Source: Heterodontus francisci (lineage: Eukaryota). From it: a stretch of 64,000 bases of DNA. Made by a program: the position numbers and the translations under genes. The notes beneath the pieces are model-generated. The model was not told the origin of the DNA and searched no databases. It saw nothing but the letters and a program-made list of their open reading frames with translations. Location: NCBI RefSeq assembly GCF_036365525.1, contig NC_090404.1, positions 8,556,001 to 8,620,000 of the forward strand. Direction: 5' to 3'. This document shows positions 4,605-57,188 of this stretch, piece by piece; the first letter of the stretch is position 1, and each line of letters opens with the position of its first letter.

Positions 4605-5309
4605 CTAGGTTGACACATAGGTGCAGAATGATGCCAGGAGTTATCTCGTCCCTGCTGTTACCTTGTGGTAAGATTAAACTAGCCTCTTCAGGTCGAGGGT
4701 AAGAGATATCTCGAGGTGTCGGGAATTGCCCTGCTTTGCTGACCAACATTGACACCTCACTCAATGCAATGAAGACATGTTGACGGATTATGCAAGTAAC
4801 TCACTATTTGTGGATCCTGATGTGTGAAATACTGACTGCAAAAATTGGCTTCTAAACAACAGTGACTTCATTTGAAAAGTTAACACGCTGTGTAAACATT
4901 TCATCATTCCCTTTATAGCCCTTTGGTTGTTAGGTCAGATACTAAAATGATTAGCGCCTTTCATGCCGACCCAAAGTGCTTCATAAACATTTTTGTACAG
5001 TCACCAATGATCAGATCATCTGCGTTGTAATGATTTGGAGAAAGGTATTCCCCAGGGCACTCGGGAGAACTCCCAGGAGTTCTTTGGACTAGTGGTGGCA
5101 TCATTTCTGTGTAACTGAGAGAACAGATGGAGCGTCGGTTTAATGTCTCGTCCGACACGGCCGACAACGGAGCACTCTTTCAATGATGTACTGAGATCTT
5201 CAGCCTGGGTTATGTGCTCAAATCACTGGAGTGGGCCTCGAATTTACAAACATCTGGCCGACATGGATCATGGGATCAATAAATTGTTGAAACGCAGCTT
5301 TTCCATAAA

Positions 5310-5582
5310 CTGTTTGCAGGACTATCTCGTCTGGCACCGTGGCGTGTTCAACTTTGCAATCGATCACACCCCCATGTCTCCATCGATATATCGGTAGAAA
5401 AACAGCCGGTGTGTATCTCCCATGTACGGCGGGATGAATTCAACTTCCTGACTGCGGTGGACGAAGTCTTCATGGATATGTTAATTTCTGGTGGATAGAA
5501 ATCCGTCACCAATCAAACTGCGGCTGCGTCTCCTCCCACGCTCAGAGCTCCACTCTGAAGGCGGAAGAGGTGCGTTTTTTGC
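5310..5582 (-). pseudogene. TCR alpha/delta-class constant Ig-domain exon (stop plus frameshifts)
   Basis: After ctttccag it reads HLFRLQSGALSVGGDAAAV*LVTDFYPPEINISMKT..., then in a shifted frame GRYTPAVFLPIYRWRHGGVIDCKVEHATV. First Cys is TGA. AAVCLVxxFYP without the following Trp fits Cdelta/Calpha rather than Ig or TCR beta/gamma. Donor site uncertain. Confidence 0.75.
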
Positions 5583-21840: not shown

Positions 21841-23282
21841 CATTCCTTATTTATACTTGTTCCCTTCCCTTTATCTTGAGTCTTTGTTTTTCCCGGAGCC
21901 TGGGGCCTATGTGACACAGAGACACGAACACACACAAAACCTTGGAAAGGTTCACGGAGACTGGGGCCCCAGGACATTCCAAAAAGCGCAAACTCTGGCA
22001 TTTATTCACATAGACTGGGGCTGATCTGACAAATCTATCTCTGCCACAATCTCGCACCTTCCCCCCTCATATCCATGGCCTCCTTCCCTCTCATCTCATT
22101 CACCGTATCCTTAATTTCTCCCCGGGCTCCCGTTGAACCTCGGCTCGGGGAGCTCAGAAGGTATGAGATCACTTTAGGAGGCCGGCGTTCACCCCCACCA
22201 CCGGGGTCACAGTCCTGGGTCACGAACCACATTCAGCACAAGCAGAAGTTCTTCATCACTGAACGGAGGATGATGACGCCCCTTGACCCGGATTGAATGT
22301 GAGAAACAGCCAATCGCGGCGCTGTGACATAAAACAGGATTGTGACGTCTTCCGCGAGAGGACAAACCGGTGGCCATCTTTGTCTGGCTGAAAACACTGT
22401 AAATGTCTTCCGTTTCTGTCTATAAATCACCTTTATTGAAAGGAACAGTGACTTAAAGTTTTCATTAAAGAAGCCGTTCGATTTAAAAGGATAAACGCGA
22501 ATGTTTGGTCAAGGGACACTTTTAAATAGTTGTCCTTAAAGCGGTTGGGGTGATGCGCATGTGCGGCCCGTTCTCCCAGAGAGCAGCACGGTCCGTACCG
22601 CAGATGGGGGCCTTTCACAGCCGCTGTGAATTGTGGGAGAAGCCACCCTCAATCACCCAATTATTAACTGAGTGTTTGCAAATCCACAATAAAAACAGGA
22701 AGTGCTGGTGATACTCAACAGGTCAGGCAGCATTGGTGAAGAGAAAAACAGAGTTAACGTTTCAGGTCTGTGACCTTTCATCCTCCTTCCAGCAGGGACC
22801 TGCCCGGGCTATTGGTCCGGAAGGACTGCGGATGTCTGTTGAACGGAGAATCTCTGATTGGACAAAGAATCCTGGAAATCCCAGGAGGTGTTCATCAACG
22901 CAAACGGGAAAGATGGATTCGAACAAAGAAAAAAAAAGAAGAAACTTTACTGGTCCCTGTGAAAACCGGCGCACAATATATTTAACCTCTAGGGTGAGAC
23001 ACGACTAAGCAAAATATACATTTTTATGGAAAGAATCACTTTATGTACACAGAAAGAAGTGAGAATGTGGAGTAAATGCAGAATTAATTTAATAGAGGAA
23101 ACGAATAGGAGATGAGAAAAGAGCAATGCTGAAGGGTATGAGCAGGAAAAGGAAAGTGCAGACTTAATGAGCTTAATGAAGTTTTGCTGCACGGTAAAAT
23201 TCTACGATTAATTGAAATTGAATATTTATACACATTTGCCATGCTCTATATCACTGCGTCTCTGCCATTCACACCATGTGCA

Positions 23283-23699
23283 GGTTTTTGTACAGCTCTC
23301 TCCGTGCTCTGTATCACTGTGTGTCTGTAATCTCCACTATGTTCAGGTTTTTGTACAGCTCTCTCCGTGCTCTGTATCACCGTGTGTCTGTAATCCCCAC
23401 CATGTTCAGGTTTTTGTACAGCTCTCTCCCTGTTCTCTATCGCTGCGCGTCTGTAATCCCCGCCAAATTCAGGTTTTTGGACAGCTCTCTCCCTTTTCTC
23501 TGTCGCTGTGTGTCTGTAATCCCCGCCAAGTTCAGGTTTTTGTACAGCTCTCTCCGTGTTCTCTATCGCTGTGTGTCTGTAATCCCCACCATGTTCAGGT
23601 TTTTGTACAGCTCTCTCCGTGTTCTGTATCACTGTGTGTCTGTAATCCCCACCATGTTCAGGTTTTTGTACAGCTCTCTCCGTGCTCTGTATCACTGTG
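23283..23699 (-). repeat. Tandem array of seven 23-spacer recombination signal sequences (63-bp unit)
   Basis: Plus-strand nonamer GGTTTTTGT starts at 23283, 23346, 23409, 23472 (GGTTTTTGG), 23535, 23598, 23661, each followed by a 23-nt spacer and heptamer (CACTGTG x3, CACCGTG, CGCTGTG x2, CGCTGCG). A degenerate partial unit lies at ~23240-23282. Confidence 0.95.
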
Positions 23700-24006
23700 C
23701 TGCGCGCCGACTCAGTGCACAGGGATACACAGCGGAGTCACTCAGTTGTAGTTTGGAGATTTTTAACCGGCAGATTTTCTCGGCAGGATCGATAGAAGCA
23801 GAAATTCGTCCCCCGGCTGCGGTTTCTTTATTATCCGCTCCTGAAGTTTGTCTCTGAAGCAGGTATTTCGGAGCCTGCCCTGGGAAGTGTCGGTACCAGT
23901 GTACTGTGTACTGACAGAACCCTGAATATTCGCAGCTTAAAGTAAACGGTGTCACCGGCAGCAGAGGTTTGCAGAGGCGGACTCCGGGACACCAGGGAAC
24001 TGGAAT
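23700..24006 (-). pseudogene. TRDV: Leaderless NAR-TCR-supporting TCRdelta V, copy 1 (+1 frameshift in FR1)
   Basis: ctgcag|AT TCC... DSSSLVSRSPPLQTSAAGDTV/TLSCEYSGFCQYTVHWYRHFPGQAPKYLL...LQLSDSAVYPCALSRRA; extra CDR1 Cys; one extra base at 23944-23946 relative to copy 2. Confidence 0.88.
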
Positions 24007-25479
24007 CTGCAGGATAAAAATGAATATTATCAATGTTTAGCCGGCGTTTACGCGGAGAAACTTGTCAATCGCAGGAATAGTTCTTTTTTTCGCGGTAATT
24101 TGCGTAATTTGACGCCTGTTCGAAATGTATTCACCGTTACTGAGATATGAACCAGTGCGGAGATGATGTGTATTTTATTTTGCACAGCGAGTTGTTATGA
24201 TGTGGAATGCAATGTCAGAATGGGTGGTAGAAGCAGATTGATATTAACTTTCAAACGGGAATTGGATAAATGTTGGACCAGGAAAATGCACGGGTCATGG
24301 AGGAAAAGCAAGGGGGAATGGGAACAATTGGACAGAACCTACAAAGACGATGGGCCGAATGACATCCCTCCATGTTGTCTGATTCAATAATTCTATTGAA
24401 TTTCTGTGTCTATTTTTCTTGGTGGAAGGCAAACTGGAGGAAACATTTTAATATTAGTGAGAGAATCACTTTACAAAAACTGTCAGTCCGGGAGTAACCC
24501 AGCTGTGTTATATCAGTACGCACAGTAAGATCCAACAGAGAGTAATGAAATTCATCAGCACAGATTGAGCGAAACTGACAGTGAACATCAAAGGTCATTC
24601 GTTTACAACAGTTCAACACTACATGAGAGCTCATTGTTGCCTTTCACTCTATTTGTCTAGTTTCTTGCATCAAAAGGGCCCATTTGTCTCTATTTCCCTC
24701 TAATTTGAAAAAAAAATGAAGTTAGTTTCATTTTATTTCTACATTTACTTTGTGCTGTTTGCGGTTCTTGCCATCATGGGAACTTGTCCCGAAGTCTCTC
24801 AGTTGTCAGTTGGGTTCAGTTTGTGCTATTTCCGCAGTGGTTTTACTGTTACTGACTGGGAACTGGCTCTTCTGGATCACTGACAATTTCAATTCCTTCA
24901 GCCCATTGGATAATTCACTCCTGTGTTCTCCAAGCGGAGTTTTCTCTGAATTTTATTTTGTACAGAATCTGCAGAGCAGGAACAGGCCATTCGGCCGAAC
25001 CGTTCTATACCAGTGTTTGTACTCCACACAAGCCTCCCGCGCCCGGACTCTAATTAACCATTTCCACCCTGAACCCTCTGTCCCTCTATTCATTGCTTCC
25101 TCCTTTTTTTTTCAAGTCGGCCCATAAATGCATCAATCCGATCGACTCCAACCACTCCATGTGGCAGCGAGATCCACATTCTGCCCTGTCTCTGGGTAAA
25201 TGAATCCTGCTTAATTAATTTATTCCGTCAGTGACATCATATATGAATGTCTCCTTATTCCGGATTCACCCACAGAAAATAGTTTCTCCATATCCAGCAG
25301 CCCATAATTTAAAAATGTCCATGAAGTCTCATTATTTTTCTCTGTTTTCCAGGGGAAAGAAGCCCAGCCTGTTCAAACATTCCAGATGGTTGTTGATTTT
25401 TTTCAGGATTTCTCAGTTTTTCAGGAGGAATATACGTTCCTCTAAGATTCAAAAACCCAACAGGAAAGATGAATTAACC

Positions 25480-28370
25480 ATGACTAACAAAACAAGTTAA
25501 AGATTACATTAGATCAAAGGAGGTGGCTTAAAGGATTGCCAAAAAAGTGTTAAACCCGAGGATTGGGAGCAATTTCGAATCCAGCAAAAGATGAGCAAGA
25601 AACAGGGAAAAGAATATGAATGCAAGCTCGTGAGAAACATAAAGGCAGACTGTAAAAGCTTCTCTAGATATGTGAAAAGGAAAAGATCAGTAAGGATAAA
25701 ACTGGGTCCATTACAAGCGGAGACAGGAGAATTTATGACGGAGAATAGGAAAATAGCAGAGAAACTAAACAATTACTTTCTGTCTCTATTTACGAGGAAG
25801 ATGCTGAAAATCCCCCAGAAATACTAGGAAACCAAAGGACTTGTGAAAATGAGGAACTTAAATGCCGTAGTATGAATAAAGAGGTAGCACTCGAAAAATA
25901 AACTGGATTGAAGGTTGATCTCTCTGGACCAGATGAGCTACATCCCAGAGTGTTGAATATTTATCTATTTTTATATTTAGAGATACAGCACTGAAACAGG
26001 CCCTTCAGCCCACCGAGTCTGTGCCGACCATCAACCACCCATTTATACTAATCCTACATTAATCCCATATTCCTACCACATCCCCACCTTCCACCTATGC
26101 TAGGGACAATTAATAATGCCCAATTTACCTATCAACCTGCAAGTCTTCGGCTGTGGGAGGAAACTGTGGGAGCCCCCGGTGAAAACCCACGCGGTCACAG
26201 GGAGAACTTGCAAACTCCACACAGGTCGTTGGAGCTGTGAAGCTGCAGTGCTAACCACTGCGCCACTGTGCCGCCCAGTTGAAGGAGGAGGCGACAGAGA
26301 TTGTGGATGGTTTGGTGATTATCTTTCAAAATTCTATAGATTCTGGAAAAGTTCCCGCAGACTGGAAAGTAGCAAATGTAAACCCGTTGTTTAAGAAAGG
26401 AGGGAGAGTGAAAACAGGGATCGAGAGACCTGTTAGTTTGACCTCAGTAGTAGAACAATGTTAGAATCTATTATAAAGGATGTGATAACTTGTTATTAGA
26501 AAATAACGTTATGATTGGGGAGAGTCAACATGGATTTATGAAAGGGAAATCATGTTTGAGAAACCGGTTGGAGTTTTTTTTAGGAGTTTACTTGTAGCAT
26601 AGATAAATGAGAACCAGTGGATGTGTGCATTTGGATTTTGAGAAAGTTTTTGATAAGGTTCAACACAGGAGATTATTAAGCAAAATTAGAATGTGGGATT
26701 GGGGGTAATACACAGGAATGGATTGAAAATTGGTTAACAGAGACAAAACAAAGGATACGAATAAATGGGTCATTCTCAGGATGACAGGCTGTGACTGGAG
26801 GGGTACCGCAAGGATCCGGGCTGGGCCACAGCTGTTCACAATGTATATAAATGATTCGGATCTGGAGACCACATATAATATTTCCACATTTGTTGATGAC
26901 ACAAAAATAAGTGGGAATGTAAGTTGTGAGGATGATGCGAGGAGGCTTCAAGCGATCTTCGGTGAATGGGCAGGAACATGGCCAATGGAATATAATGTGA
27001 ATCAGTGTGAAGTTATCCACTTTGGTGGATAAAATGGATTAAAAAAAACAGAAAGACAGAGTATTTCTTAAATGGTTAGAAGTTGGGAAGTGTGTTGTCC
27101 AAAGGGACCTGGGTGTCCTTGTTCATGAGACACTTAAAGCTAGCATACAGGTGCAGCAAGCAATTAGGAAGGCACATGGTATGTTGGCCTTCATCGCAAG
27201 GGGTTTTGAGTACAGGAGTAAAGGCGTACAACTGAGATCGTACCTGGAGTATTGTGTACAGTTTTGGTCTCATCTAAGAAAGGATAGACATTCCGTATAG
27301 GGAATGCAACGGAGGTTCGCCAGACTAAACCCTGGGATGGTGGAATTATCCAATGAGGAGAGATTGAGAAAAGTGGGCATGTATTCTCTCGAGTTTCGAG
27401 GAATGAGAGGTGATCTCACTGAAAATTGCAAAATTCTTACAGAGCGTAACAGGATGGATGGAGATAGGATGTTTCCCCTGGCTGGTGTGTCTAGAACTAG
27501 GGGACTTAGTCTCAGAATAAGGAGTAGGCCATTTAAGACTGAGATGAGGAGGAATTTCTTCACAAAAAAGGTACTGTATTTTTGGAATTCTCTACCCCAG
27601 AGAGCTGTGGAAGCTCAATCATTGAGCATGGTCAAGACATAAATCGATTGATTTCTGGATAATAATGACATCAATGGATATGGGGAAAGCACGGGAAAGT
27701 GGCGTTGAGGTAAATGATCAGCCATGATGTAGTGGAATGGCAGTGCAGGCCCGATGGGCTGAATGGCCTACTCCTGTTCCAATTTCCGATGTTCCTGTAT
27801 TCCTATGAATGTAAGAAATCGAAGCTGGTCATATAAGAACATCAGTAATAGGAGCAGGAGTAGACCATTCCACCTTTCAAGTCTGCTGCGCCATTCAATA
27901 AGATCAAGGTTGATCATCTACTCCATCTTCCCGCACTATCCCTAGGTCCTTTAATTCATTTAGTATCCACAAATCTATCGAACACTGCCTGGAATATACT
28001 CAGCCACTGGGCATCCACAGCTCCCTAAGGTATAGAATTCCACAGAGTCAGAACAGAAGTTTGAATGAAGAAATTTCTCTTCTTCTCGGTTCTAAATGAC
28101 GACCCCATATTTTTGACTCTAACCCCAAGGTGTAGACTGAGGAAACACCGCCCCAACACCTACCCTGTCAAAGCCCTTCGGAAATTTTATGTTTAACGAG
28201 GTCATCTCTTATTCTTCGAAACACTACGGAATATATGCATAGTCTTGTCAAACTTTCCTCATAGGACTATCCTCTTATCCCAGGAATCAGTCTCGTGGAC
28301 CTTTGTTTCACTCCCCCCAAAGCAAATAGATCCTTCCTTAAATAAGGTGATTAAACTGTACACCGTAGTA
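25480..28370. mobile_element. Degenerate CR1-type LINE (+) followed by minus-strand CR1 pieces, in the J to supporting-V intron
   Basis: VPADWKVANVNPLFKKGG, FVDDTK, FWNSLPQRAVEA fragments; homologous to 51845-55730. Confidence 0.85.
25965..26277 (-). mobile_element. tRNA-derived SINE present only in duplicate copy 1
   Basis: Same family as 16030-16355; the homologous site in copy 2 (~52330) is uninterrupted. Confidence 0.8.
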
Positions 28371-29389
28371 CCCTGGAGAACACCAGAGTTCATCACTGCC
28401 CTTCCCTCCATAAACTTCACCCTTCACCCTGGTGTCGGATTGTACTTCGAATGGCTTCGTTCAATATTTCTATCCATTTCGGTGAATTATTTTTAGCTGG
28501 TTCTAAATAGGTTGTCCTCCAGTCTGTACTTTTTCCCTTGAGTGTTCCTGATCTCCTTTCTAAGAACATTAGCACCTCATCCTCAATCCCTCAGTGTCCA
28601 GTATTGTTTCAATTAACAGTTAGCAGGGTTACAGTTAAATTACTCCAATCCAATCGCTCAAACATCAATATTTAATATAGAGAATTATCTGGAACTGAAA
28701 ACATTTGCATTTCAGTCTGAGGGCGGAAAAGGAGGGAAATGATTGGATGAAGGCAATTGAAATAAATTTCATCTACAATAAAACTAATTTCAGTCGCTGA
28801 ATCCCAATAATAAAATGCCAACGGCACCAACAACAGGATCTCTTGTATCTGAAGCCTGTTTTGTCATGTTGCCGTTTTTCTGCTGCTGCAGATATCGGGC
28901 TGGCTGCTGTCGTGTACTGTTCACTCTCCCTCTATTCACATTGCCCGGCTCGGACGACAACCTCCTCCCCGGGAGAGAGTTCTGTGACCCCGCTCATGTG
29001 CTCACAGGGACAATCACATGGAACACCGAGAGCGGGGTCGAAGTGTCGACAAACTGAGTTCATTTAGGAGAGAGGGAAAGAGAGTAAATCCGGAATGTTG
29101 ATGGGATGCTCGGACATGCCCGTGAAATCAATGCTGATCCAGATGGAGTCAAAGCTACCCGGGCCAGACTGCCTGCTCTGTGGGGGTGTCACATCGACTC
29201 ACTCGGGAATCACACCCGGACCCGACTCCCGGTTCATATTCTGTTCCCCAATCCAAAACTGCAATGGAAAAGCTCTATTGGAAACCTCTGTGTTTTAGTT
29301 TGAAGGGGATTGAAGTGTTACTGAAAACAATGATAAAGTGACAATGAGCATTTTACAGAGATGGCCTGTATGGGTTTGGAGTCACTTAC

Positions 29390-29453
29390 CGGCTGTGACA
29401 GTCACCACCGTCCCGGATCCATCCGCAGAAGCATCCTTCCGCTCATTATATAC
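29390..29453 (-). other. NAR-TCR J segment, copy 1, with 23-RSS at 29454-29492
   Basis: VYNERKDASADGSGTVVTVTA|gtaagt; plus strand CACAGTG (29454-29460), 23 nt, ACAAGAAGT. Confidence 0.92.
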
Positions 29454-29830
29454 CACAGTGACACCGCTCCCAGTCACCCTGGTACAAGAAGTACCGACAC
29501 CTCAATCTACCAGCCGCACATCACCAGATAGTTGGCGATGCTCAATTATTCCAGGGGTTTTAAATCATTTCACAATATTCCCTTGTTTCACAATCCATAT
29601 CTGTTCAACCTGCTGTTTTTGAGACTCTGAGCTCTTAGTGAAATGGCCCAGGAACAGGGGCCGGATTTGGGCGCTTGATATAAAAGGAGAATAATGTCAA
29701 TGAATAATGTCAAAGAAAGCGAACTGAAAGGAGGAAATTACAGTGAAATTAAACCAGATTACAGCGATAATAATATCAATCCTACAATTCAGGATCTGGA
29801 CCTGGAGTATTTATATTTTGATTTTACAGA

Positions 29831-29900
29831 GGTATTTGCTCAGATCTCAAGCACTGTGAATATCCCAGAAAACACAATGTTTCAAGTCAGCACAAAATCC
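29831..29900 (-). other. NAR-TCR D segment, copy 1 (14-nt core 29859-29872) flanked by two 12-RSSs
   Basis: GGTATTTGC-12-CACTGTG-AATATCCCAGAAAA-CACAATG-12-ACAAAATCC. Confidence 0.93.
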
Positions 29901-30260
29901 CCCGGTACCTGGTGAGATGTGGGGACATTACTTTAACAGCGGAGACTGCGGTTCCCGGTTCCAGCTGATAGATCAGGATCCCATCTGGTGTTAGGAATTT
30001 GGAACTGGGACCAGACATTCCCAATCTCCATTCACTGACAGAAAGCCCGGGAAAGACATCACCATCCGCAGACACTCGGCATTTATAAAACTCAAGATGT
30101 TAACGGTAACAATCCAATAACATAAACTAGACTGTGGAGCAGACGGTACGAGGGGGATCTGTGGGGTTGAACGGCAGATTAACTCCGTTTTTTCATTTGA
30201 TTCTGTGATAATCTGCAGTGTGAATTTTTGTACCGCGGGAAGCCGAGGCCCATCACTGTG

Positions 30261-30745
30261 TGTCATCGTACCTGTACTCAGCTTTACAGTAATAGGTGGC
30301 GGTGTCTTCAACTTTCACATCCCGAATTTCCAGAGAAAATGTTTTTTCTGCATTATTCGTCCTCACAGCAAATCGCCCTCCGCTGGAGATCCGCTCCCGC
30401 TTTGTCCCGGTCTGGGTTTGTCTGAAGAAATATCCATTTCGGAATTCATAGCCCCAAAACCCACCTTCATAGTAAACACAGGTGATGGTGAGAGACTGAC
30501 ACTCCTTCCTGGTCACCGCTCCCGGGGTCTGTGTCACTGACTGACTGAAAGAGCCTGGAAATTAAAGAGAGAGAGTTTAATGGGCCATCAGAGCCGAACC
30601 ACATAACGAGACTAAAATCCGAGACAGTGTCTGTAACTCGGATGGACTCAGGCAGTTTCATATTAAAGCCACACAATGTCGGTTTGTTTGGTCGGTACTC
30701 ACGGGGTAAACAGACACACAGGGTGAAAACAAGGAGGATTCCCAT
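30261..30745 (-). CDS. NAR-TCR V, copy 1 (leader 30745-30703, V exon 30554-30261), RSS 30223-30260
   Basis: MGILLVFTLCVCLP|gtgagt; SFSQSVTQTPGAVTRKECQSLTITCVYYEGGFWGYEFRNGYFFRQTQTGTKRERISSGGRFAVRTNNAEKTFSLEIRDVKVEDTATYYCKAEYRYDD. IgNAR-like (CDR2 deleted, RERIS-GGRF) with extra FR1 Cys; CACAGTG-22-ACAAAAATT. Confidence 0.93.
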
Positions 30746-33143
30746 CGTTCTGCTGCCTGGAGCTGATGGTTTCTCTGACGGGGAGCTGGAGACTGCAGCC
30801 CTGGACTGTTCTGGGAGACTGGACCTCAGAGCTGGACTGAAATACTTCAGGGCGATCGAGTTGATTGGCAGAGGGCAGTATCCCGGAGATCATTGATGGG
30901 CCGCACGGTTCCCGGGTCTCTGTCTGTCTGTGTGTTGTGTGAATAAGTGACAGGTTTAAAGAGGGAAGCTGCCGTTTTCGGTCACTTCATTGGGTCTGTG
31001 AGCCCGATGTGAAATCCCTCCCACATTCGTCTGATGTACAGGGGGTGGGGCTGGGGGGGCGTGGTTTCTGTCAGTAGAAGCTGCCGCCCTCCTTTCCCCC
31101 ACAGTAATGAGCTGGGAGGTCGCTCCATGTGCTTTTATTGAGTGGTGTTTGTTGAGGGTGGAATGTGGGCCCAGGACACCGGGAGAATCCCCCCTCCCCG
31201 CTCTTGTTCCAATAGTGCCGGGGATTCTTTAACATCTCCCTGAATGGGCTGGCGGGGCATCGGTTAAACGTCTGATCTGAAGGACGGAGCCTCAGACCCG
31301 GCAGCTTCCTTCAGTCCAGCAACTGAGGGTCAGGTTACAATTTGAGACAGTCCAGTGACATTGTCAATATCCAGGCAGATATACACAATCTACACAAAGA
31401 ATAAACTCTCCCTGTCATTTAAACACATGCTTCCTGCAGCCTCCCTTTCTGTGGTTTGTATTTAAAATGATGTTTGAATTCAGTAATGATTGATTTCCAG
31501 ATCTGTAATATTCAGTTGCCAGTTGCAGTGACAGAGAATGAAGAGACACCCGGAAGGACAATGGACATCGGGGGAACTCTGTGCTTGGGGCTTGTTTTAA
31601 AGATCACAGTCACTACCTTGTGCATTCCGTTTATTTTGTATAAACTGTCTCCGCCCCACTCTGATCAAATAAACTTTGTGAACAGGCCGCGGTGAAAGGC
31701 TCCGGGAAACTGACGGGGAGACAGGGAAAGGACTGCTCAGTACAAATATGGAGTTGTGGATCACAGCCCGGCACACACATGGCCAATAGTTTAATGGATC
31801 TCGCAGCACCTCCAGATGAGGCTGCCGCAGGGTCCTAATGTCCCCCTGAATACTAAACACTCATCTGCTTCATCGGAACATCATTCAAGACCACACACAA
31901 ACTGTCTGCTTGACGCATAATTTTTGCACATCAAGTATTTATCCAATTGCCTTTTACTTTTGAATGTTACTATTGAACCTACTTCCACTGCTCTGTCAAA
32001 TATAATAACTCTTAGCATAAAATTGTTTTATTTATAGAGCGACTTTCACGGAACGAAGCATCCCATCTACAGGTAGGGACAGAAATCTTGTTGAAATATG
32101 ATTCTTGCAGAGGCCAATGTTGCGGAGTTCTTAAGGCACCGGCTGCACTCGCACTAACAGAGGAAGGAATATTAGTAATGTCAATAACACTCATGTTACT
32201 GCACAGCCCAATTTAAAGAGTTCACGAATCCTTGAAAATAATCTGAAGGAGAAATGGTGAATGATTGAAGTTATTTCAATCCCCACTTCATGGAGGTTTT
32301 CATGAACTTGGTGAGGGAGCAGAGGAGATTTAATAGACTGTGATCAGCTATGGGGGACTTGTGGAGAGGCTAGAGAAGCTGCAGTTATTCTCTATATGTG
32401 AAATAAGATTAAGGAGATTTAATTGTGAGGTTCAAAATTATATTGGGTTTTGATATAATAGATCGCATGTAACTGATTCCAGTGGCAGGAAGTTTGATAT
32501 CCCAAGGACACAGATTTCAGGGAATTGCCACAAAAGACATGGGAGAGGAGATTTTTTTTTAAGGGCGAGTTTCATGATTTGGAATGTACAGCCTGAAAGG
32601 GTGGAGGAAGCAGATTCAATAGTAATTTTCAGAGAACTGTATATGTGCTTGAACAGGACTGTATGAGAGCATGGCAAGTAAGACTAAGGCGATAGCTCTT
32701 TCAAAGAGCCGGCGCAAATACGATGGGCCAAATGGTATCATTCGTGACTGTGTGATCCAATGTTTCTCGTCGCTTCATTTCTCCCGCAAGTCAGTTGTTC
32801 CCAGTCACCTAAACAGTGATCAGGAGCAGCCTGGCAACAGAATTCTGCCATCCAACTATCTCCCTTTCCACGACATCAACATCCTCACTGCGCAATCTCT
32901 GCAGTTACACAGAATCTTGAGTTAACTTAAACTGGAGTTGGTGGTAGCCCCGCCCACAGCTTTAGTTTGCTGCTCGCTCTCTCTCTCTCTTTCTCTCTGA
33001 ACTGCCTTGCCTGCCCCGTTTTGGAGATTGCTGTCGCTGGTCCTTGTTTGGTATTAAATCGGCAGTGCAGTGTGGCGAGGATCTGTCTTCCTGCTCCGAC
33101 AGAATATTTCCCAGACTGCAGAGTTACAGACTCCAGGAACACC

Positions 33144-33650
33144 ATGTAGAACCGTCTCTCACCGCTTCTCATTATTATATCACTTCTCAGTAAGTATTTC
33201 CTTCCCAGTAAAAATCCATTCTCCACAGAGCTGTCAATATGGGTGAAATGGTAGTGATGATGGTGTTGATGGTTAGATTGATCGATATGGTATTGATGCA
33301 CATTGTGCCTGTTACTACTTTTTGTATGTTTGAATGGAGCCACCAAGACACAATGGAACAGCCGACTCCTGAAATGATGGTTGAAGGGGAAGGTAATATC
33401 ACACTAATGTGGACCATGAAAACAAGCATTTCTAACACTTTCTGTGCTCCGGTACAGTCAGCACCCTGGGCAGCCTCCACAGTACGTGTTTTATCTCTAT
33501 GGAGGGAGAGTACACCGGAACCCCGACTTCACTGACCGATCCTCTTCTACCTTTAGCAAAACTGCCAAGATTACCCAGCTAAAGATCCACAACGCCCTGA
33601 TCTCTGGCACCGCTGTGTATTTCTGTGCCATCATGTGCCATGAGCCCCAC
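33144..33650 (+). pseudogene. TCR V pseudogene, copy 1
   Basis: Leader ATG TAG...|gtaagt; QDTMEQPTPEMMVEGEGNITLMW.../YSQHPGQPPQYVFYLYGG...LKIHNALISGTAVYFCAI; stop, frameshift, no intact RSS. Confidence 0.8.
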
Positions 33651-34683
33651 CCCGCTGCAGAGATGTCACTGATACTGTATTCACTGAGAGTTGCAGTTAG
33701 AGCTCACCAGAGGGCGCCCTCACACCAGTAAACAGAAGCTATAATTCAGCCTCCACTCTGAGATTCTCAGGAACCTTCTTAAAATTGCAATGAAGCACAG
33801 CAAGCAACAGCCACAGCTGATGTCCACTTGTGCAGTTATATTAGATTGTGATTACAACGCGTATTTATATGAAAAATTAACTTTATATTCGATCTGTGAT
33901 GCCTTGGCTCCCTTTTTGTTTCTCTATGCTCTCCCCCTGTCCACTTGTTCCTCATTATCGCGTGGCTCCACTGTTCAACTAAAAGTGAATACATTTCCTT
34001 TTTCCGGTCTTCAGTTTAAAGGTTTAAAACCTTTGTTTCTGCTCGGAATATAAATTCAGAACCGTTCCAATCGAGCTTCTATAAGCAGGAGCTGTCAGAT
34101 CAGGCCAATGGCTCAACGCAGAATTCCTCACAGCCTGTTCACTGCCATCTGACCACTTCCCAGTACAGCCACCAGAGGGCGGCAGATAGCAATACTCCTT
34201 TCATGGATCAAACGTTGGGCAGTGAGGTGATTTCTGTTTCACCAAAAGCTGAGTAAAACTTGGAATATATAGAAGTTTAATACTTGAAATCAATTTACTT
34301 CAATGGATTGGGAAGGTACATTGAATAATAATCCTCACAAAGAAGCATCCACGTATCGAACGATTGGTTTCTGATACTAACCAGTGAGCAGGACAAGTGA
34401 GTGGAAGTTGTGGAAGATGGTGAAAGAATATTAAAATGTGAATGACAAACACACTCTGAGATTTCATTTCTGAAGCCGCTCGCTGTCCCGTTAGTTGAGA
34501 TCGATGTTAAAGGTTTATTTCTGTTCGGTTGTTTTGTTCAGTAACAGCAGATATCATTGTTCAAATAGGAAGGATCTATAAATCAATCTGGTAAAATACA
34601 GAATCATTGTTAGTTCACTGGTTAACTAATCGGTGAAGGAAATCTCACTGGAGTCACGGTTACCAGTGTGCTGATGGTGAAGT

Positions 34684-36215: not shown

Positions 36216-37651
36216 ATGCGACTCCCTGTTCTCGCTGTGCTGTGGCTTTCATTCATTGTCGGTAAGAAACTTAACATATTTGAAAGGCATGAAATCGTGT
36301 GACATTGATCACAAGTCGTGGGAGTCAGTTGCCAGCATTCGCCAGAGCTGGCGGGCAGCCATAAAGACAGGGCTAAATTGTGGCGAGTCGAAGAGACTTA
36401 GTAGTTGGCAGGAAAAAAGACAGAGGCGCAAGGGGAGAGCCAACTGTGCAACAGCCCCAACAAACAAATTTCTCTGCAGCACCTGTGGAAGAGCCTGTCA
36501 CTCCAGAATTGGCCTTTATAGCCACTCCAGGCGCTGCTTCACAAACCACTGACCACCTCCAGGCGCGTATCCATTGTCTCTCGAGATAAGGAGGCCCAAA
36601 AGAAAAAAGAAGTTTCCAGTGGAATAAATTTGAAGAAGAGCGCGTTCATGTTAAATTTGTAATGAACCTGGTTAGACCACAATCGGGTTATTGTGAGCAG
36701 TTTTAGCCTCCAGATTGCAACATGGATATAGGAACAGAAGAGAATGGAGAAGAACGATTTGCAAGAATGATGCCAGAATTGAGAGATAATTTCGCAGAAA
36801 CCATTGTACAGGCTGAGGCTCTAATAAAGGGAAAATTGAAGGCTAATCTGATAGATATCTTTAAAATTGTGAAGTAGTTCGATAGGGTAGACGTAGAGAA
36901 AATGTTTCCACTCGTATAGAATTGCAAGTCTATGAACCATAAATATAAAAGTCACATACAGATCCGGTAGGGATTACAGGAGAATGTAATTCTCCCTCGC
37001 AACCACAAGGAGGGTTGAGGTGAATAGTATGGATACATTTAAGGGGAATGTAGAAAAACAGGTGAGGGAGAAAGGCATAGAAGGATATGCTGATAGAGTG
37101 AGATAAAGAGAGGTGGAGGATGCTTCGGGGGTGGGGGGTGGGGGGGTTTGGGTGTTAACGCTGGCATGGAGCAGTTTGACGGAATAACCTGTTCCATGCT
37201 GTAAATTCTATTGAAATTTATGAAACACTGACTGCGAATTTTCACAGTCGGTTCGATTCAGATGAACTTATAATCGATGATTTCCGATTTCTTTAACCGT
37301 GTGTTCCAGATCTGAGCGATGGAGATTCTGTTACTCAGCGGGAATCCTCGCTCACTCAGACAGAGGGAGAATATGTCACTTTAACCTGCACCTATCCCGG
37401 CGATGGTTATGACTTATTCTGGTACCCAGAATACCCAGGCAGACAGCCCGAGTTTGCAGTCCGGAGGTACAAGAGCGGCCGTGATGAATTGAAGACGGAT
37501 TTCGCTCGGAACCTGTTTTCTGATAGAGTCCAGCAGTCAGACAAGTTGTACCGATTGACCATCTCGAGCTGCGGCTGTCTGACACCGCGGTCTATTACTG
37601 TGCACTGAGCCTCACAGTGATGGGAACGAGCTAAAGCCTCGTACAATAACT
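36216..37651 (+). pseudogene. TCR alpha/delta V (leader 36216-36261, V exon 37310-37612, 23-RSS 37613-37651), single 1-nt deletion in FR3
   Basis: MRLPVLAVLWLSFIV|gtaaga; DLSDGDSVTQRESSLTQTEGEYVTLTCTYPGDGYDLFWYPEYPGRQPEFAVRRYKSGRDELKTDFARNLFSDRVQQSDKLYRLTIS/LRLSDTAVYYCALS; CACAGTG-23-ACAATAACT. Confidence 0.9.
36285..36610 (+). mobile_element. RTE-type LINE 3' end in the V leader intron
   Basis: WESVASIRQSWRAAIK...FLCSTCGRACHSRIGLYSHSRRC C-terminal zinc finger followed by an A-rich tail. Confidence 0.75.
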
Positions 37652-39119: not shown

Positions 39120-41310
39120 AGCTAACTTGTGGACGCTCAGCGCCAACTCTCAGACATTTCTTCATAACTTCCCCTGGACTATGACCCACCGAACATCAAG
39201 CGACTGTCCACAGGACTGTCACTGACCTCATCTCCTCTGGAGATCTTCCGTCTACAGCCTTCCACCTCACAGACCCGCAACCCCGGACAGCCTGCTTCTA
39301 CCTCCTTCCCAAAATCCACAAACAGGACTGTCCCGGCAGACCCATTGTTTCAGCCTGTTCCTGCCCCACTGAACTTATCCTATCTTGACTCGATCTTTTC
39401 TCCCCTAGTCCATTCTCTTCCCACCTACATCCGTGACTCTTCTGACTCCCTACGTCATTTTGACAATTTCCAGTTTCCCGGCCCTAACCGCCTCCTCTTC
39501 ACTATGGACGTCCAATCTCTCTACACTTCCATCGCCCACCAGGACGGTTTGAGGGCTCTCTGCTTCTTCCTTGAACAGAGGCACAACCAGTCCCCATCCA
39601 CCACCACCCTCCTCCATCTGACTGAACTTGTTCTCACATTGAACAACTTCTCCTTCAACTCACTCACTTCCTTCAAGTAAAATGTGTTGCAATGGGTACC
39701 CGCATGGGTCCTAGTTATGCCTGTCTTTTTGTGGGATATGTCGAACATTCCTTGTTCCAGTCCTACTCAGGCCCCCTCCCCCAATCTTTTTCCGGTACAT
39801 TGATGAATGTATCAGTGCCGTTTCCTGCTCCCGCCCCGAACTGGAAACCTAATCAACTTTGCTTCTAATTTCCACCCTTCTCTCACCTTCACATGGTCCA
39901 TCTCCGAAACTTCCCTTCCCTTCCTCGACTTCCCTATCTCCATCGCTGGGGATAGGATGTATACTAATATCTATTATAAACCCACCGACTCCCACAGTTA
40001 CCTCGACTACAATTCTTCACATGCTGCCTCCCGTAAGGTCTCCATTCCATTCTCCCAGTTTCTCCGTCTCCGATGCATCTGCTCTGATGATGCTACCTTC
40101 CATGAAAGCGTTTCTGATATGTATTCCTTTTTCCTCAACCCAGGATCCCACCCCCTCAACCCCATTGTGGTTGACAGGGCCCTCAACGGTGTCTGGCCCA
40201 TTTCCTGCACCACTACCCTCATCTCTTCCCCTCCTTCCCAGAACCGCGACAGGGTTTCCCTTGTCCTCACTTTCCACCCCACCAGCCTCCATATCCAAGG
40301 GGTCATCCACCACCATTTCCGCCACTTCCAGCGTGATGCCACTACCAAACGCATCTTCCCCTCCCTTCGCCTGTCAGCATTGCGAAGGGATCATTCCAAC
40401 TGCGACACCCTGGTCCACTCCTCCATTACCCTCACCACGTCGTCCCCTTTCTACGGCACCTTCCCCTGCAATCGCAGGAGGTGTAATACCTGCCCATTTA
40501 CCTCCTCTCTCCTCACTATCCCAGTCCCCAAACACTCCTTCAGGTGAAGCAGTGATTTACTTGTACATCTTTCAATGTAGTATACTGTATTCGCCGCTCA
40601 CAATGTGTTCTCCCCTACACTGGGGAGACCAAACGCAAACTGGGTGACTGCTTTGCAGAACACGTCCGCTCAGTCCAAAAGCATGAGCCCGAGCTTCCGG
40701 TTGCTGGCCATTTCAACACTCCCCCCTGCTCTCATGCTCACAACTCAGTCCTGGGATTGCTGCAGTGTTCCAGTGAACATCAACGCAAGCTGGAGGAACA
40801 GCATTTCATTTACCGATTAGGCACACTACAGCCTGCCGGTCTGAACATGGAGTTCAATAATTTCAGAGCATGGCGGGCCCCCCATTTTACTTTTATTTTT
40901 AGTTATGTTCTCTTTCTTTTACTTATTGTGTTTATTTTATTTTAGTTTGTTCAGTTTGTTTCTACAGTACCTACCCACTGCGTTTTTATTCATGTTTGTG
41001 CTTGTGGCTGTTCAGTTTTCAGTCCATTCACATCCTATCTGCATTAATGCTTTGTCTTCACACCATTAACATACTGTTTGTCTTTGTTCCATGACCTTCT
41101 GGTCAGCTATTCTGTAACCTTGTCCTATCAACACCTTCTCTTTTGTTATCTCTTGCACCCCAACCCCGCTTTACTTGCTTAAATTCTTTTACATTTCTTA
41201 TATCTGCGTTCTGAAGAACGGTCACTGACCTGAAACGTTAACTCTGCTTCTCTTTCCACAGATGTTGCCAGACCTGCTGAGTATTTCCAGCGCTTTTCGT
41301 TTTTATTTAA
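39120..41310 (+). mobile_element. Penelope-like retroelement (RT plus GIY-YIG), degenerate
   Basis: MDVQSLYTSI, AMGTRMGPSYA, FRYIDE, YYKPTDSHSYL, FTCTSFNVVYCI...GETKRKLG; 3' pLTR. Confidence 0.9.
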
Positions 41311-43268: not shown

Positions 43269-44912
43269 GAAAGCTAAGATGGTTCCCCTGGTTGGGGAGT
43301 CTCGAACCAGGGTACATATTTTCAAAATAAGGGGGAAGCCATTTCGGACAGAGATGGGGAGAAATTTCTTTACCCAGAGGGTTGTGAATTTTGGAATTCT
43401 CTAACCCAGAGGGCTGTGGATTCTCAGTCATTGCGTATGTTTAAAGTGGAGATTGACAGATTTCTAAATACAAATGGCATAAAAAAAATAGAGGGATAGT
43501 GTGGGGAAAAGGCATTGAATTGGAGGATCAGCCAAGATCTTTTTGAATGGCATACAGGCTCGAAGGGCTGAATGGCCTACTCCTGCTTCTGTGTTCTTAG
43601 ATAATGCCACTGTTTACATTCCGCTGCCCTACAATACATCTTCAATTCCTGTGCAGTGCGACAGAGTTTAAAGGCACGGAGACCTTTACCAACCTGACTG
43701 CAGCTCGGTGACTCTGACTTCCCTTAGTATACCAGAGACTTGCCATTGTGCTGAGTCCAGTGCCCCTCATATACCAAGTAACAGCTTTCTATGACACAGA
43801 CCGCCCCCGCCACCCCCCCCCCCCCCCGACCCCCCCTTCTCCCAGGTCTGGAAGAGATTGGGAAGTTATCTGTGTCCAGAATGATGGTGGTGGTGTTGGT
43901 GACTAGGAGGGTAGTGACTTTTGTCATATGACAGTCTCCCGAATGGTTCCTTCCTGAGCCTGTGTGAGGTGTCTGCCGCAATGATCTGAGTCTATGGGCT
44001 GCTCCGCGGGAATCACCTTTTAACCACTGAGTATAGACTGTCACTGAGCTGATCCAGAGAGGGAAGCTGCACTCACCTGCACAGGGATATTGATCACAAC
44101 GTCCTTTTAGTTAATCACATTCTCCCACTTAATATATATAATTGCTTTATTTTACGTGCTGTTTGTTCAACCTCTCGTTCCCGTGCCTTTGGACTGTGGG
44201 TGGGAGCTCATGCCTATTGGGAGTTGTGTAGAATCTTGGGAAGATGCAGCCACAATGTGCAGCGCGCTGTCAGACGCTCAAACACACACCGAGAGGAAAC
44301 CAAATTAACCTCGGATCAACTGTCACCCAACTGTTTCCAGGAGCGGCCGAGAAAACAAACTGGAGAATCCAATCGGACGGACACATCCGTCACTGAACCA
44401 TTCTATCGATTAAACCATCCTTGCTTCTCATCAACTGTTTACTCCATTAAAATCATGGATCGATGTTCAGATCAGCACCGAGACAGAGGTTGCTGACACT
44501 CAAACGTCCCTCAAACATGCATAGGCACGTCACGCACCTGTTCTGCGTGTTTCTCCCTATTTCCCCCATTCCCTTTACAGTTCCTAGATTTCCACACATT
44601 TCCCTGTCCCTTGACGACACGATACTTTCTGCATTTGAGATGTGTATCACCAAGCTTCAGTCAGACTGTGTCAAATCAGCCCTCCCATTATTCATTTGTA
44701 TTACACAGATGAGTGCCTGGCCTTTTCCCTAACTGAACGGCAACGGGGCCATTGTAATGGAGGAACACTCAGCACAACCCTAATGAAAGTGTTCAGTTTC
44801 TGTTCCTGCATCGATCTCCCTCTGCTGATGTCTCTGTACCTGCACCTTTATCTCTTTCCACCTGTTACTGTCTCTCTGCATCACGAAACTCAGTCTCACC
44901 TTTAACTCTTTG

Positions 44913-45110
44913 TGACGTCACACTGCAGACTGTGTGACGTCAGGCGGCAATTGGTGTGATGTCATTCTGCAGTCTGTGATGTCAGGTTGTAGTCGCTGAG
45001 GTCAGAATGCAGTCGGTGTGACGTCAGCCTGAAGGCTGTGTGATGTCATTCTGCAGTCTGTGATGTCAGGCATCAGACACTGAGGTCAGACTGCAGTCGG
45101 TGTGACGTGC
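44913..45110. promoter_or_regulatory. Array of ten CRE/ATF-like motifs (TGANGTCA) at 20-22-bp spacing
   Basis: TGACGTCA x3, TGATGTCA x4, TGAGGTCA x2, TGACGTGC x1; regulatory function is inference. Confidence 0.45.
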
Positions 45111-45451
45111 CTATGTAGGCTTGAGAAACGTTTGAGTGTCAGCACCCTCTGTCTCGGAGCTGGTCTGGACATTGATCTATGATTTTAATGGAATAAACAG
45201 CTGATCAGAAGCAAGGACGGTTTGACCAGTAGACTGATTCAGTGACGGATCTGTCTGTCTGATTGGATTCTGCAGTTTGTTTTCTCGGCCGCTCCGGGAA
45301 ACAGTTGGGTGACAGTTTGATCCAAGGTTAATTTACTTCCCTCTCGGTGTGTGTTTGAGCGCTTGACAACGCGCTGCATATTGTGGGTGCCTCTGCCCGC
45401 GATTCCACACAACCCCCAATTGGCAGGAGCTCCAATCCACAGTCCAAAGGC

Positions 45452-45945
45452 AGTTTTTGTACAGTGCTGAGACTATTTTCCATCACTGTGAGTCCCAGAG
45501 ATTGCGCGGTAATACACGACAGCATCAGTCAACTGCAAATCGATAATGGTTACACTTGTGAAGGAGTCTGAGGCTGCGAGTTCTGAAGAGAAACGGATTC
45601 ATAACCATCCTTTCCATTCCACTCTCTCCCAGGACCGTTTCCACACAACAAACTGGTGCTCCTTCTCTAGTTGCAGCCGGGAACAATATAAATAATACCT
45701 GTCTTCAGCGGTGCTATCGGTAAATCTTGCAGTCACCGTTTCACCTACTCTTCCACTCACTGAAGACTGGGGCTGAATAACAGAATCTCCATCACTCCGA
45801 TCTGTAAAGTTTTCAGGAAGGAGATAAGATCGAATATTCAAAGGATTCATTGAAAAAAAAAGTATTAGTTTGAACACGCAATATTGGAGACATCCTTACC
45901 GACAGCAAAGAGCCCAAACACAACCCATTTGCTGAATATCCGCAT
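45452..45945 (-). pseudogene. TCR alpha/delta V pseudogene (leader 45945-45900, V exon 45801-45491, 23-RSS 45490-45452)
   Basis: MRIFSKWVVFGLFAV|gtaagg; DRSDGDSVIQPQSSVSGRVGETVTARF...GWL*IRFSSEL...LQLTDAVVYYRAISG. Both Cys and the Trp are lost, but the RSS CACAGTG-23-ACAAAAACT is intact. Confidence 0.88.
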
Positions 45946-47092: not shown

Positions 47093-48280
47093 CACACAAG
47101 GTGCTGCCTCCTGGGTCCATCTCAGTGTGTGTGTCAGCTCCCAAGGTGCAACCTCCTGGGTCCATCTGTGTGTGTGTGTCAGCTCACAAGGGGCTGCCTC
47201 CTGGGTCCATCTCAGTGTCAATGTCAGCTCACAAGGGTCTGCCTCCTGGGTCCATCTCAGTGTGTATGTCAGCTCACAAGGGGCTGCCTCCTGGGTCCAT
47301 CTCAGTGTGTATGTCAGCTCACACAAGGGGCTGCCTCCTGGGTCCATCTCTGTGTGTATGTGTCAGCTCAGAAGGGGGAGCCTCCTGGGTCCACCTCAGT
47401 GTGTATGTCAGCTCACAAGGGGCTGCCTCCTGGGTCCATCTCAGTGTGTATGTCAGCTCACAAGGGGCAGCCTCCTGGGTCCACCTCAGTGTGTATGTCA
47501 GCTCACACAAGGGGCTGCCTCCTGGGTCCATCTCAGTGTGTATGTCAGCTCACAAGGGGTGCCTCCTGGGTCCATCTCCGTGTGTATGTCAGCTCACACA
47601 AGGGGCTGCCTCCTGGGTCCATCTCTGTGTGTATGTCAGCTCACAAGGGGCTGCCTCCGGAGTCCATCTCAGTGTGTATGTCAGCTCACAAGGGGCTGCC
47701 TCCTGGGTCCATCTCAGAGTATGTGTCAGCTGACACAAGGGATGCCTCCTGGGTCCATCTCTTTGTGTATGTCAGCTCACAAGGGTCTGCCTCCTGGGTC
47801 CATCTCAGTGTGTATGTCAGCTCACAAGGGGCTGCCTCCTGGGTCCATCTCAATGTGTATGTCAGCTCACAAGGGGCTGCCTCCTGGGTCTATCTCAGTG
47901 TGTATGTCAGCTCACAAGGGTCTGCCTCCTGGGTCCATCTCAGTGTGTATGTCAGCTCACAAGGGGCTGCCTCCTGGGTCCATCTCAGTGTGTATGTCAG
48001 CTCACACAAGGGGCTGCCTCCTGGGTCCATCTCAGTGTGTATGTCAGCTCACAAGGGGCTGCCTCCTGGGTCCATCTCAGTGTGTATGTCAGCTCACACA
48101 AGGGGCTGCCTCCTGGGTCCATCTCTGTGTGTATGACAGCTCACACAAGGGGCTGCCTCCTGGGTCCATCTCAGTGTGTATGTCAGCTCACTCAAGGGGC
48201 AGCCTCCTGGGTCCATCTCAGTGTGTATGTCAGCTCACACAAGGGGCTGCCTCCTGGGTCCATTTCATTGTGTATGTCAG
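47093..48280. repeat. 42-44-bp minisatellite, about 27 copies
   Basis: CACAAGGGGCTGCCTCCTGGGTCCATCTCAGTGTGTATGTCAGCT units; explains the long repetitive ORFs. Confidence 0.95.
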
Positions 48281-49189: not shown

Positions 49190-49875
49190 TTTAACACGAT
49201 GGTAGTGTCACACAACACAATGGAGGGGATCCTCAATGTGAAGACGGGACTTTGTCTCCACTAGGACTGTGCGGTGGTCACTCCTACCAATACTGTCATG
49301 GACAGATGAATCAGCGGCAGGCAGATTGGTGAGGACGAGGTCAAGTATGTTTTTCCCTCTTGTTGGTTCCCTCACCACCTGCCGCAGACCCAGTCTAGCA
49401 GATATGCCCTTTAGGACACGGCCAGCTCGGTCAGTGGTGCTACCTAGCCAGTCTTGATGATGGACATTGAAGTGCCCAACCCAGAGTACATTTTGAGCCC
49501 TTGCTACCGTCACTGTTTCTTCCAGTTGGTGTTCAACATGGATAAGTACTGATTCATCAGCTGAGGGAGGGCGGGAGGTGGTAATCCGTTGGAGGATTCC
49601 TTGCCCAAGTTTGATCTGACGAAATGAGACTTCGTGGGGTCGGGAGTCATTGTTGAGGACTCCCAGGGTAACTCCCTCCTGACTGTATGCCACTGTGCCA
49701 CCACCCCTGGCAGGACATACCCGGGGATGGTGATGGCAGTGTCTGGGACATTGTCTGTCAGGTATGATTCCATGAGAATCACTGCGTCAGGCTGTGGCTT
49801 GACTAGTCTGTGGGGCATCTCTCCCAATTTTGGCACTAACCCCCCGATGTTAGCAAGGAGGACTTTGCAGGGTCC
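49190..49875 (-). mobile_element. LINE endonuclease-domain fragment abutting the RSS array
   Basis: LWVGHFNVHH, VREPTRGKNILDLVLTN, IGRSDHRTV (APE-type endonuclease motifs). Confidence 0.85.
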
Positions 49876-49900
49876 ATGTCTGTAATCCCCACTCTGTTCA

Positions 49901-50065
49901 AGTTTTTGTACAACTCTCTCCATGCTCTGTATCACTGTGTGTCAGTAATCCCCACCATGTTCAGGTTTTTGTACAGCTCTCTCCGTGCTCTGTATCACTG
50001 TGTGTCAGTAATCCCCAACATGTTCAGGTTTTTGCACAGCTCTGTCCCTGTTCTGTATCACTGTG
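49901..50065 (-). repeat. Tandem array of three 23-RSSs (63-bp unit)
   Basis: Nonamers at 49901 (AGTTTTTGT), 49964 (GGTTTTTGT), 50027 (GGTTTTTGC); CACTGTG at 49933, 49996, 50059. Confidence 0.95.
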
Positions 50066-50371
50066 CTGTGCGCCGACTCAGTGCACAGGAATACACAGCG
50101 GAGTCACTCAGTTGTAGTTTGGAGATTTTTAACCGGCGGATTTTCTCGGCTGGATCGATTGATGCAGAAATTCGTTCCCCGGCTGCTTTTTCTTTATTAT
50201 CCGCTCCTGAAGTGTGTATCTGAAGCAGGTATTTCGGAGCCTGCCCTGGGGATTGACGGAACCAGTGTACTGTGGACTGACAGAAGCCTGAATATTCGCA
50301 GCTTAAAGTAACGGTGTCACCGGCAGCAGCGGTTTGCAGAGGCGGACTCCGGGACACCAGGGAACTGGAAT
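50066..50371 (-). CDS. TRDV: Leaderless NAR-TCR-supporting TCRdelta V, copy 2, open frame
   Basis: ttctgcag|AT... DSSSLVSRSPPLQTAAAGDTVTLSCEYSGFCQSTVHWFRQSPGQAPKYLLQIHTSGADNKEKAAGERISASIDPAEKIRRLKISKLQLSDSAVYSCALSRRT; CDR1 Cys; no leader exon found upstream. Confidence 0.9.
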
Positions 50372-56747: not shown

Positions 56748-56811
56748 CAGCTGTGATAGTCACCACCGTCCCGGATCCATCCGCAGAAGCATCCTTCCAG
56801 TAATTATATAC
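56748..56811 (-). other. NAR-TCR J segment, copy 2, with 23-RSS at 56812-56850
   Basis: VYNYWKDASADGSGTVVTITA|gtaagt; CACAGTG-23-GCAAGAAGT. Confidence 0.92.
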
Positions 56812-57188
56812 CACAGTGACACCGCTACCAGTCACCCTGGTGCAAGAAGTACCGACACCTCAATCTACCAGCCGCACATCACCAGATAGTTGGCGATGCT
56901 CAATTATTCCAGGGGTTTTAAATCATTTAACAATATTCCCTTGTTTCACAATCCATATCTGTTCAAACTGTTCTTTTTGAGACTCTGAGCTCTTAGTGAA
57001 ATGGCCCAGGAACAGGGGCCGGATTTGGGCGCTTGATATAAAAGGAGAATAATGTCAATGAATAATGTCAAAGAAAGCGAACTGAAAGGAGGAAATTACA
57101 GTGAAATTAAACCAGATTACATCGATAATAATATCAATCCTACAATTCAGGATCTGGACATGGGGTATTTATATTTTGATTTTACAGA

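Follow-up and report, generated by a model that had tools for sequence, protein, structure and literature searches.

Tandem recombination signals behind a NAR-TCR supporting Vdelta segment look like a repeat expansion

A V segment normally carries one recombination signal (RSS). In the V segments of TCR alpha/delta, this ordinary single signal is a 23-RSS with a consensus heptamer at the coding border, a 23-nt spacer, and an A-rich nonamer. Signals used beyond primary joining are known as the kappa-deleting element/RS, deltaRec and psiJalpha, and the cryptic heptamer of VH replacement; each of these is one site that allows a second event on the allele with a defined outcome (deletion or V replacement). 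Competition between like-oriented signals for one partner has reportedly been followed on tandem-RSS substrates, which are said to be built plasmids with two signals whose use depends on the quality and the position of the signal. Apart from these, head-to-tail repeats with units of 10-100 bp are known as minisatellites.

The NAR-TCR delta chain is doubly rearranging (Criscitiello et al. 2006, as summarised in PMC1845163 and PMC12227049). In these summaries, the leaderless supporting Vdelta is preceded by a NAR V-D-J minicassette, the J of which is spliced to this V. The NAR-TCR V has a Cys in the a-b loop and is without the canonical Trp, and the supporting Vdelta has an extra Cys in CDR1 (PMC1845163). 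The locus described below is organised in this manner and, in addition, carries RSSs in tandem behind the supporting Vdelta. The tandem array is real and apparently undescribed, and it looks like a repeat expansion and not a device.

The window (the whole stretch of 64,000 nucleotides of Heterodontus francisci that was analysed) contains two NAR-TCR cassettes, A and B, the features of which are collected in Table 1. The V segment before the longer array had been named a NAR-TCR supporting Vdelta in the initial annotation, and this identity was supported by the leaderless exon with its acceptor, the NAR V-D-J upstream, the Cys in CDR1, and, at the level of the family, a J splice in RNA. In both cassettes, an acceptor AG directly precedes the supporting V exon, and the minicassette is composed of a NAR V with a 22-nt RSS, a D with two 12-RSSs, and a J with a 23-RSS and a GT donor. 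The NAR V-D-J of cassette A lies approximately 5.4 kb upstream of V-A on the same strand, and its NAR V has a single RSS with a 22-nt spacer at 30260-30223. The length of 22 nt, not 23, was observed for the RSS spacers of both NAR-TCR V segments (30223-30260 and 57584-57621). The NAR V segments read KECQ, which contains the a-b loop Cys, and FFRQ, in which the canonical Trp is absent. The supporting V segments have the extra Cys in CDR1 (SGFCQ; YPC in V-A), and one protein relative of V-B (P0001, 72% identity) has the same CDR1 Cys.

Table 1 Coordinates of the arrays, the supporting V segments, and the neighbouring features within the window.
Feature	Position	Strand	Evidence
Stub of an eighth unit of array A, 20 nt (CGCAGTG + 13 nt of spacer)	23239-23258	minus	17/20 against the consensus; DNA contigs bridge flank, stub, and unit 7
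Array A, seven gap-free 63-bp units	23259-23699	minus	Repeat finding, unit parsing, and RSS pattern search
V-A, leaderless supporting Vdelta exon of cassette A	23700-24006	minus	Acceptor AG at 24008-24007; Pfam V-set E = 8e-14 (part beyond the insertion)
NAR-TCR J of cassette A (..GSGTVVTVTA + one base, then GT donor)	29390-29453	minus	23-RSS at 29454-29492
NAR-TCR D of cassette A, 14 nt (29859-29872) between two 12-RSSs	29831-29900	minus	
NAR-TCR V exon of cassette A	30223-30537	minus	Pfam V-set E = 3e-9; a-b loop Cys, FFRQ
LINE endonuclease fragment, ~670 bp	49208-49876	minus	Pfam Exo_endo_phos_2 E = 8e-11
Array B, three 63-bp RSS units behind V-B	49877-50065	minus	Repeat finding and pattern search; 434-nt DNA contig
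V-B, supporting Vdelta exon of cassette B	50066-50371	minus	Pfam V-set E = 3e-17; frame open from acceptor to RSS (phase 1)

In the RNA-like run of the same sample (X5), contigs were placed on the V exon and almost none on the intron directly upstream. One RNA contig stopped at 24007 and continued into a J that reads GSGTVVTVTA and is nearly identical to the J of cassette A. With its 26 differences this contig belongs to a paralogue, so that it documents the J-to-V splice and the phase for the family and not for V-A itself. The intron upstream of V-A also includes a stretch (24175-24276) with very high word depth in all runs, including that of the related species, and this stretch is a high-copy interspersed repeat. 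Downstream of the cassettes and on the same strand, TCR C-domain-like frames (LVTDFYPPEINISM.. and ..VIDCKVEH) were observed in two frames at 5221-5512 (minus). Between V-A and these frames, no convincing D or J with a 12-RSS was found in the window; a 12-spacer candidate at 21915-21942 was without a J-like flank and was rejected.

Tandem Repeats Finder detected array A at 23242-23699 with a period of 63, 7.3 copies, 90% matches, 0% indels, and a score of 685, and a separate repeat search gave seven copies in register with a start-to-start spacing of exactly 63. The array lies on the minus strand, a point on which the initial annotation was silent, and was parsed from 23699 downward, with units starting at 23699, 23636, 23573, 23510, 23447, 23384, and 23321. 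Each unit consists of a heptamer (7 nt), a spacer (23 nt), a nonamer (9 nt), and a linker (24 nt), and the earlier description of seven like-oriented 63-bp repeats of this composition 3' of the V was thus borne out. The heptamers of units 1 to 7 are CACAGTG, CACAGTG, CACAGCG, CACAGCG, CGCAGCG, CACGGTG, and CACAGTG, respectively, and the nonamer is ACAAAAACC in six of the seven units and CCAAAAACC in unit 4. The spacer of 23 nt and the linker of 24 nt were each kept in 7/7 units. The parsing confirmed the counts given previously, namely six of the seven units with CAC and six with a perfect nonamer. Units 1, 2, and 7 agree with the consensus at 16/16 heptamer and nonamer positions, and the heptamer of unit 5 (CGCAGCG) is without CAC and does not qualify as a heptamer. 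The sequence past the stub of the eighth unit is unrelated flank.

The V frame of V-A reads GCA CAG TGA into heptamer 1 (ORF 23692-24033), and the TGA that had been noticed within the first heptamer was found again both in this ORF and by frame reading. Because 63 bp corresponds to 21 codons, TGA is in frame again in every unit keeping CAGTGA. ORFs of 149-193 aa within array A were rejected as artefacts of the periodicity.

A search of the window for heptamer-N23-nonamer with at most two mismatches gave 12 matches, compared with 0.04 expected from shuffles, and 10 of the 12 fell inside arrays A and B. CAC was kept in 6/7 units of array A and in 3/3 units of array B. When the ten units of both arrays were taken together, the spacer was exactly 23 nt without indels in all ten, the heptamer was exactly CACAGTG in six, and the nonamer was perfect in seven, with one mismatch each in the other three. 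Only unit 1 of each array has its heptamer next to a coding segment, and the later units adjoin the 24-nt linker. The possibility that the RSS unit is a piece of a transposable element was rejected for the window, where no copy was found outside the two arrays.

The initial annotation had proposed that the decay of heptamer and nonamer be compared with that of the linker, and had named equally fast decay as a result that would refute its proposal. Against the unit consensus, the ten units showed, per site and unit, 0.071 mismatches in the heptamer, 0.070 in the spacer, 0.033 in the nonamer, and 0.079 in the linker. The nonamer was the least diverged part, but no excess conservation of the signals over spacer and linker was obtained (Fisher p = 0.37, and p = 0.18 for the nonamer alone, both with ten units). 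As far as ten units can show, the two signal elements have thus diverged to a similar degree as spacer and linker, in agreement with the refuting outcome, although this number is too small to exclude weak selection.

Cassette B is a sister of cassette A with 93% identity over approximately 10.6 kb (23511-34129 vs 49877-61951). The three heptamers of array B are all CACAGTG, and its nonamers are GCAAAAACC, ACAAAAACC, and ACAAAAACT. Array B closes with a full 24-nt linker, and the very next base, at which a fourth heptamer would be due, is the first of the LINE fragment. The flanks below arrays A and B are unrelated, indicating that the homology of the cassettes ends inside the arrays. The remaining four V-type segments in the window (two NAR V and two frameshifted conventional V) have one RSS each, which traces the two arrays to one ancestral event. 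Furthermore, the 63-bp unit, the linker, and the proximal boundary are common to both cassettes, so that two or more units were already present when the cassette was duplicated. Unit A1 has 1 difference from B2, 1 from A2, and 3 from A6; the positional unit pairs of A and B have 6, 2, and 10 differences, respectively, and A3-A5 form a subgroup of their own. The units of the two arrays are therefore not positional orthologues, and the arrays have turned over since the cassette duplication.

Several other features were observed in the window. Cassette B is separated from the next V by sequence that includes a 45-bp satellite of 26 copies (47095-48280). An inverted repeat of 350 bp with 87% identity has its arms at 44184-44533 and 45102-45452, with a 22/84-bp tandem repeat between the arms. 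A frameshifted V (45877-45491) has a single 23-RSS, and the nonamer of this signal ends within 1 nt of the start of one arm. A conventional alpha/delta-type V in the opposite orientation, 37300-37651 (plus), has a frameshift and a single 23-RSS, and the stretch 39265-41307 near this V is an inverted copy of 61954-64000 with 85% identity.

Alignment of V-A with V-B revealed a single 1-nt insertion in V-A, an extra T in the run 23944-23946, without a compensating change, which the initial annotation had missed. The frames of V-A and V-B were read with the single J carry-over base placed before the V exon. In the phase supported by RNA (..TVTA-D-SSSLVS..), V-A has TAA TAA at codons 59-60 (23833-23828). 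In the reads at 23944, the family depth in DNA belonged partly, and in RNA mostly, to the shorter form without the T. Contigs bearing the extra T were also present in the family depth of both DNA and RNA, so that the extra T is no obvious error of the assembly. The frame would be restored by a second AG located 7 nt into the V-A exon (start 23999), and FR1 would then be replaced by a Pro- and Cys-rich stretch that is unlike the Ig fold. V-A is probably a pseudogene, a judgement to be read together with the T-bearing copies that the family depth includes and with the position of the insertion within a T run.

The read data also bear on the number of units. No contig spanning all seven units of array A was found among those listed, and the runs are possibly the assembly's own source, so that the count of seven rests on the assembly. 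One DNA run had almost no depth over 23461-23562, and at position 23480 the sole contigs placed read T, where the assembly reads G; this T would make the nonamer of unit 4 perfect and could be an allele or a paralogue. These points would fit a copy number that is an assembly artefact, with a true locus of one or few units inflated by repeat mis-assembly. However, the units have private differences of a kind that assembly errors of collapse or expansion would not create, and DNA contigs of the sample link the distal flank to unit 7 (22900-23310 with 3 differences, and 22939-23310 with 1 difference). In another run, contigs at about the depth of the flank were placed across the diverged central units of array A, and the independent three-unit array B, continuing into its flank, was matched within one DNA contig of 434 nt. 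An array of 460 bp is, moreover, trivial for long-read assembly. We regard an artefact in copy number as very unlikely.

No joints at the heptamers were found among the read matches listed. The RNA-like run X5 contained an exact 230-nt contig over the distal flank and unit 7 (23076-23304) and a 94-nt contig with 1 difference over the V end and RSS 1 (23655-23748), suggesting low-level read-through transcription of the unrearranged V and its array, or residual DNA.

In a related species (run X6), contigs carried the unit in tandem. Those placed on 23585-23665 continued into a further spacer and heptamer, and one contig returned 111 nt within the array. Most of the X6 depth belonged to a 60-bp form, which is 3 nt shorter in the spacer/nonamer part and is without the 23-nt spacing. 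The summed word depth of the units was far above that of the V exon in X6 and about twofold above it in the sample itself, a qualitative comparison in which depth is not copy number. As a qualitative sign, these depths suggest that the unit can amplify without keeping the RSS geometry. A scan of metagenome contigs with the supporting-V alignment found no relative, and a scan of other collections for two 23-RSSs 10-40 nt apart found none.

Taken together, these findings point to an inherited germline minisatellite derived from an RSS, in which the good distal copies are probably wasteful competitors; we estimate the probability of this reading at about 65%. The supporting Vdelta's own 23-RSS and the 24 nt behind it would have been duplicated in tandem, and at least two units would have been present before the duplication of the ~10.6-kb NAR-TCR cassette. 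The arrays would then have changed in length and been partly homogenised by unequal exchange or slippage, which would have led to seven and three units. In lymphocytes, as the sequence shows, an open V-D joint is possible from unit 1 alone. The distal consensus units would probably also be cut by RAG, as we infer from RSS recognition and from the competition of RSSs on substrates, and the resulting joints, V + n x 63 bp, would contain the stop. In mammalian loci, RAG scans in from a downstream recombination centre. If RAG scans in likewise at this locus, the first convergent signal would be the perfect unit 7, and joining would be diverted from the productive unit 1. The array can be no better than neutral and more probably carries a mild cost, and it may be tolerated in cassette A because V-A is probably already a pseudogene.

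The minisatellite reading agrees with the head-to-tail units, the numbers of seven and three between paralogues, and the other unit form and its abundance in the related species. Twelve tandem arrays cover approximately 5% of the window, a fact to which the initial annotation had given no weight, and in so repeat-rich a window, with one ancestral event, it is not unlikely by chance that one RSS lineage of about five came to lie in a minisatellite. Some observations, however, speak against it: the nonamer has diverged least, three good signals have been kept behind the intact V-B, array A has three perfect units among its seven, a second species also has arrays, and the array border on the V side, like the distal one of array B, coincides exactly with the coding/heptamer border, which plain slippage does not predict.

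An alternative is a selected device, and the initial annotation had suggested three forms of it: a stock of signals for serial re-rearrangement, a RAG-loading platform, which would favour engagement of the cassette, or a decoy that delays joining of the supporting V until the NAR V-D-J has formed. The retention of CAC and of a perfect nonamer in six of the seven A units, the three good signals behind the intact V-B, the expression of a V family that is spliced from the NAR J, and the tandem unit-like sequence in the related species all fit such a device. Within the window, arrays stand behind supporting V segments only, but one ancestral event lies behind both arrays and this link is therefore a sample of one; the longest array, moreover, stands behind the V that is probably frameshifted. 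As had been predicted, a joint through a distal RSS would be non-productive, carrying the in-frame TGA. The proposed stock nevertheless brings no gain, since unit 1 is the sole productive RSS and is usable once, so that a reserve of distal signals adds no productive attempts; by the logic of the arrangement, distal joints only use up downstream 12-RSS partners. None of the three forms found support. The signals show no excess conservation over linker and spacer, and the 23-nt spacing is lost in most copies of the related species. A selected device is thus unlikely in our judgement.

The exact array ends raise the question of whether RAG acted in the germline, building or trimming the arrays by nicking or cleavage at the coding/heptamer border with misaligned repair, an explanation of origin only that is compatible with a minisatellite. 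The 63-bp periodicity starts at the first base of heptamer 1, and array B ends after a complete linker, where heptamer 4 would start, although at this junction it meets the LINE fragment, and LINE elements can create junctions by themselves. An exact position was seen for two out of three independent ends, for which random phase gives a probability of ~8e-4, a post hoc value calculated after the data were seen; the distal end of array A falls away from any heptamer border. The inverted repeat that begins behind another V, within 1 nt of the nonamer end, points in the same direction as the exact ends. RAG is reportedly active in shark germ cells, as judged from germline-joined Ig genes; to our knowledge, however, no RAG reaction has been documented to yield tandem duplications, and we consider this origin very unlikely. 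A broader proposal is that RAG both generates RSS arrays and uses them: nicking in the germline would seed the duplication, which would account for ends lying exactly at heptamer borders, and thymocytes would use the distal signals. The supporting V segments would then pass through stepwise, mostly sterile joints before the productive joint, and RSS-derived repeats would be a distinct class of RAG-driven genome change in sharks; we hold this proposal to be improbable.

Whichever origin applies, a V with several consensus signals is a natural competition experiment on whether RAG takes the first, the best, or any signal, and on the tolerance of sterile joining. Should supporting V segments commonly be followed by arrays, or array ends prove to cluster at heptamer borders, the arrangement would bear on the ordering of the doubly rearranging NAR-TCR and on the reshaping by germline RAG of its own target sites in sharks. 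If the arrays are plain minisatellites, as we think most likely, the lesson is one for annotation, because RSS scanners call many false gene-segment ends here. A full-text literature search returned no account of tandem RSSs behind any V. The arrangement, which the initial annotation had believed to be new, is apparently undescribed, and an earlier description may still exist.

Unit 1 occupies the usual place of the one 23-RSS behind TCR alpha/delta V segments and matches it in the consensus heptamer at the coding border, the 23-nt spacer, and the A-rich nonamer; the difference is that here the signal and 24 nt are repeated head to tail, seven and three times, and that units 2-7 adjoin a linker. 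The RSSs of secondary rearrangement have in common with the arrays that they are extra signals beyond primary joining, which allow a second event on one allele; each of them is a single site with a defined outcome, whereas the distal units here would give stop-bearing joints of one V only. The tandem-RSS substrates share the like-oriented signals competing for one partner, which are found here in a natural chromosomal array. With the NAR-TCR of the summaries cited above, the locus shares the NAR V-D-J minicassette upstream of a leaderless Vdelta, the CDR1 Cys, and the splicing of J to V, and multiple RSSs behind the supporting V are not mentioned in these review-level accounts. Finally, gap-free 63-bp head-to-tail units, a copy-number difference between paralogues, partial homogenisation, and nearby arrays are shared with minisatellites, from which the arrays differ in that the unit is a complete, mostly consensus recombination signal at a place where RAG acts.
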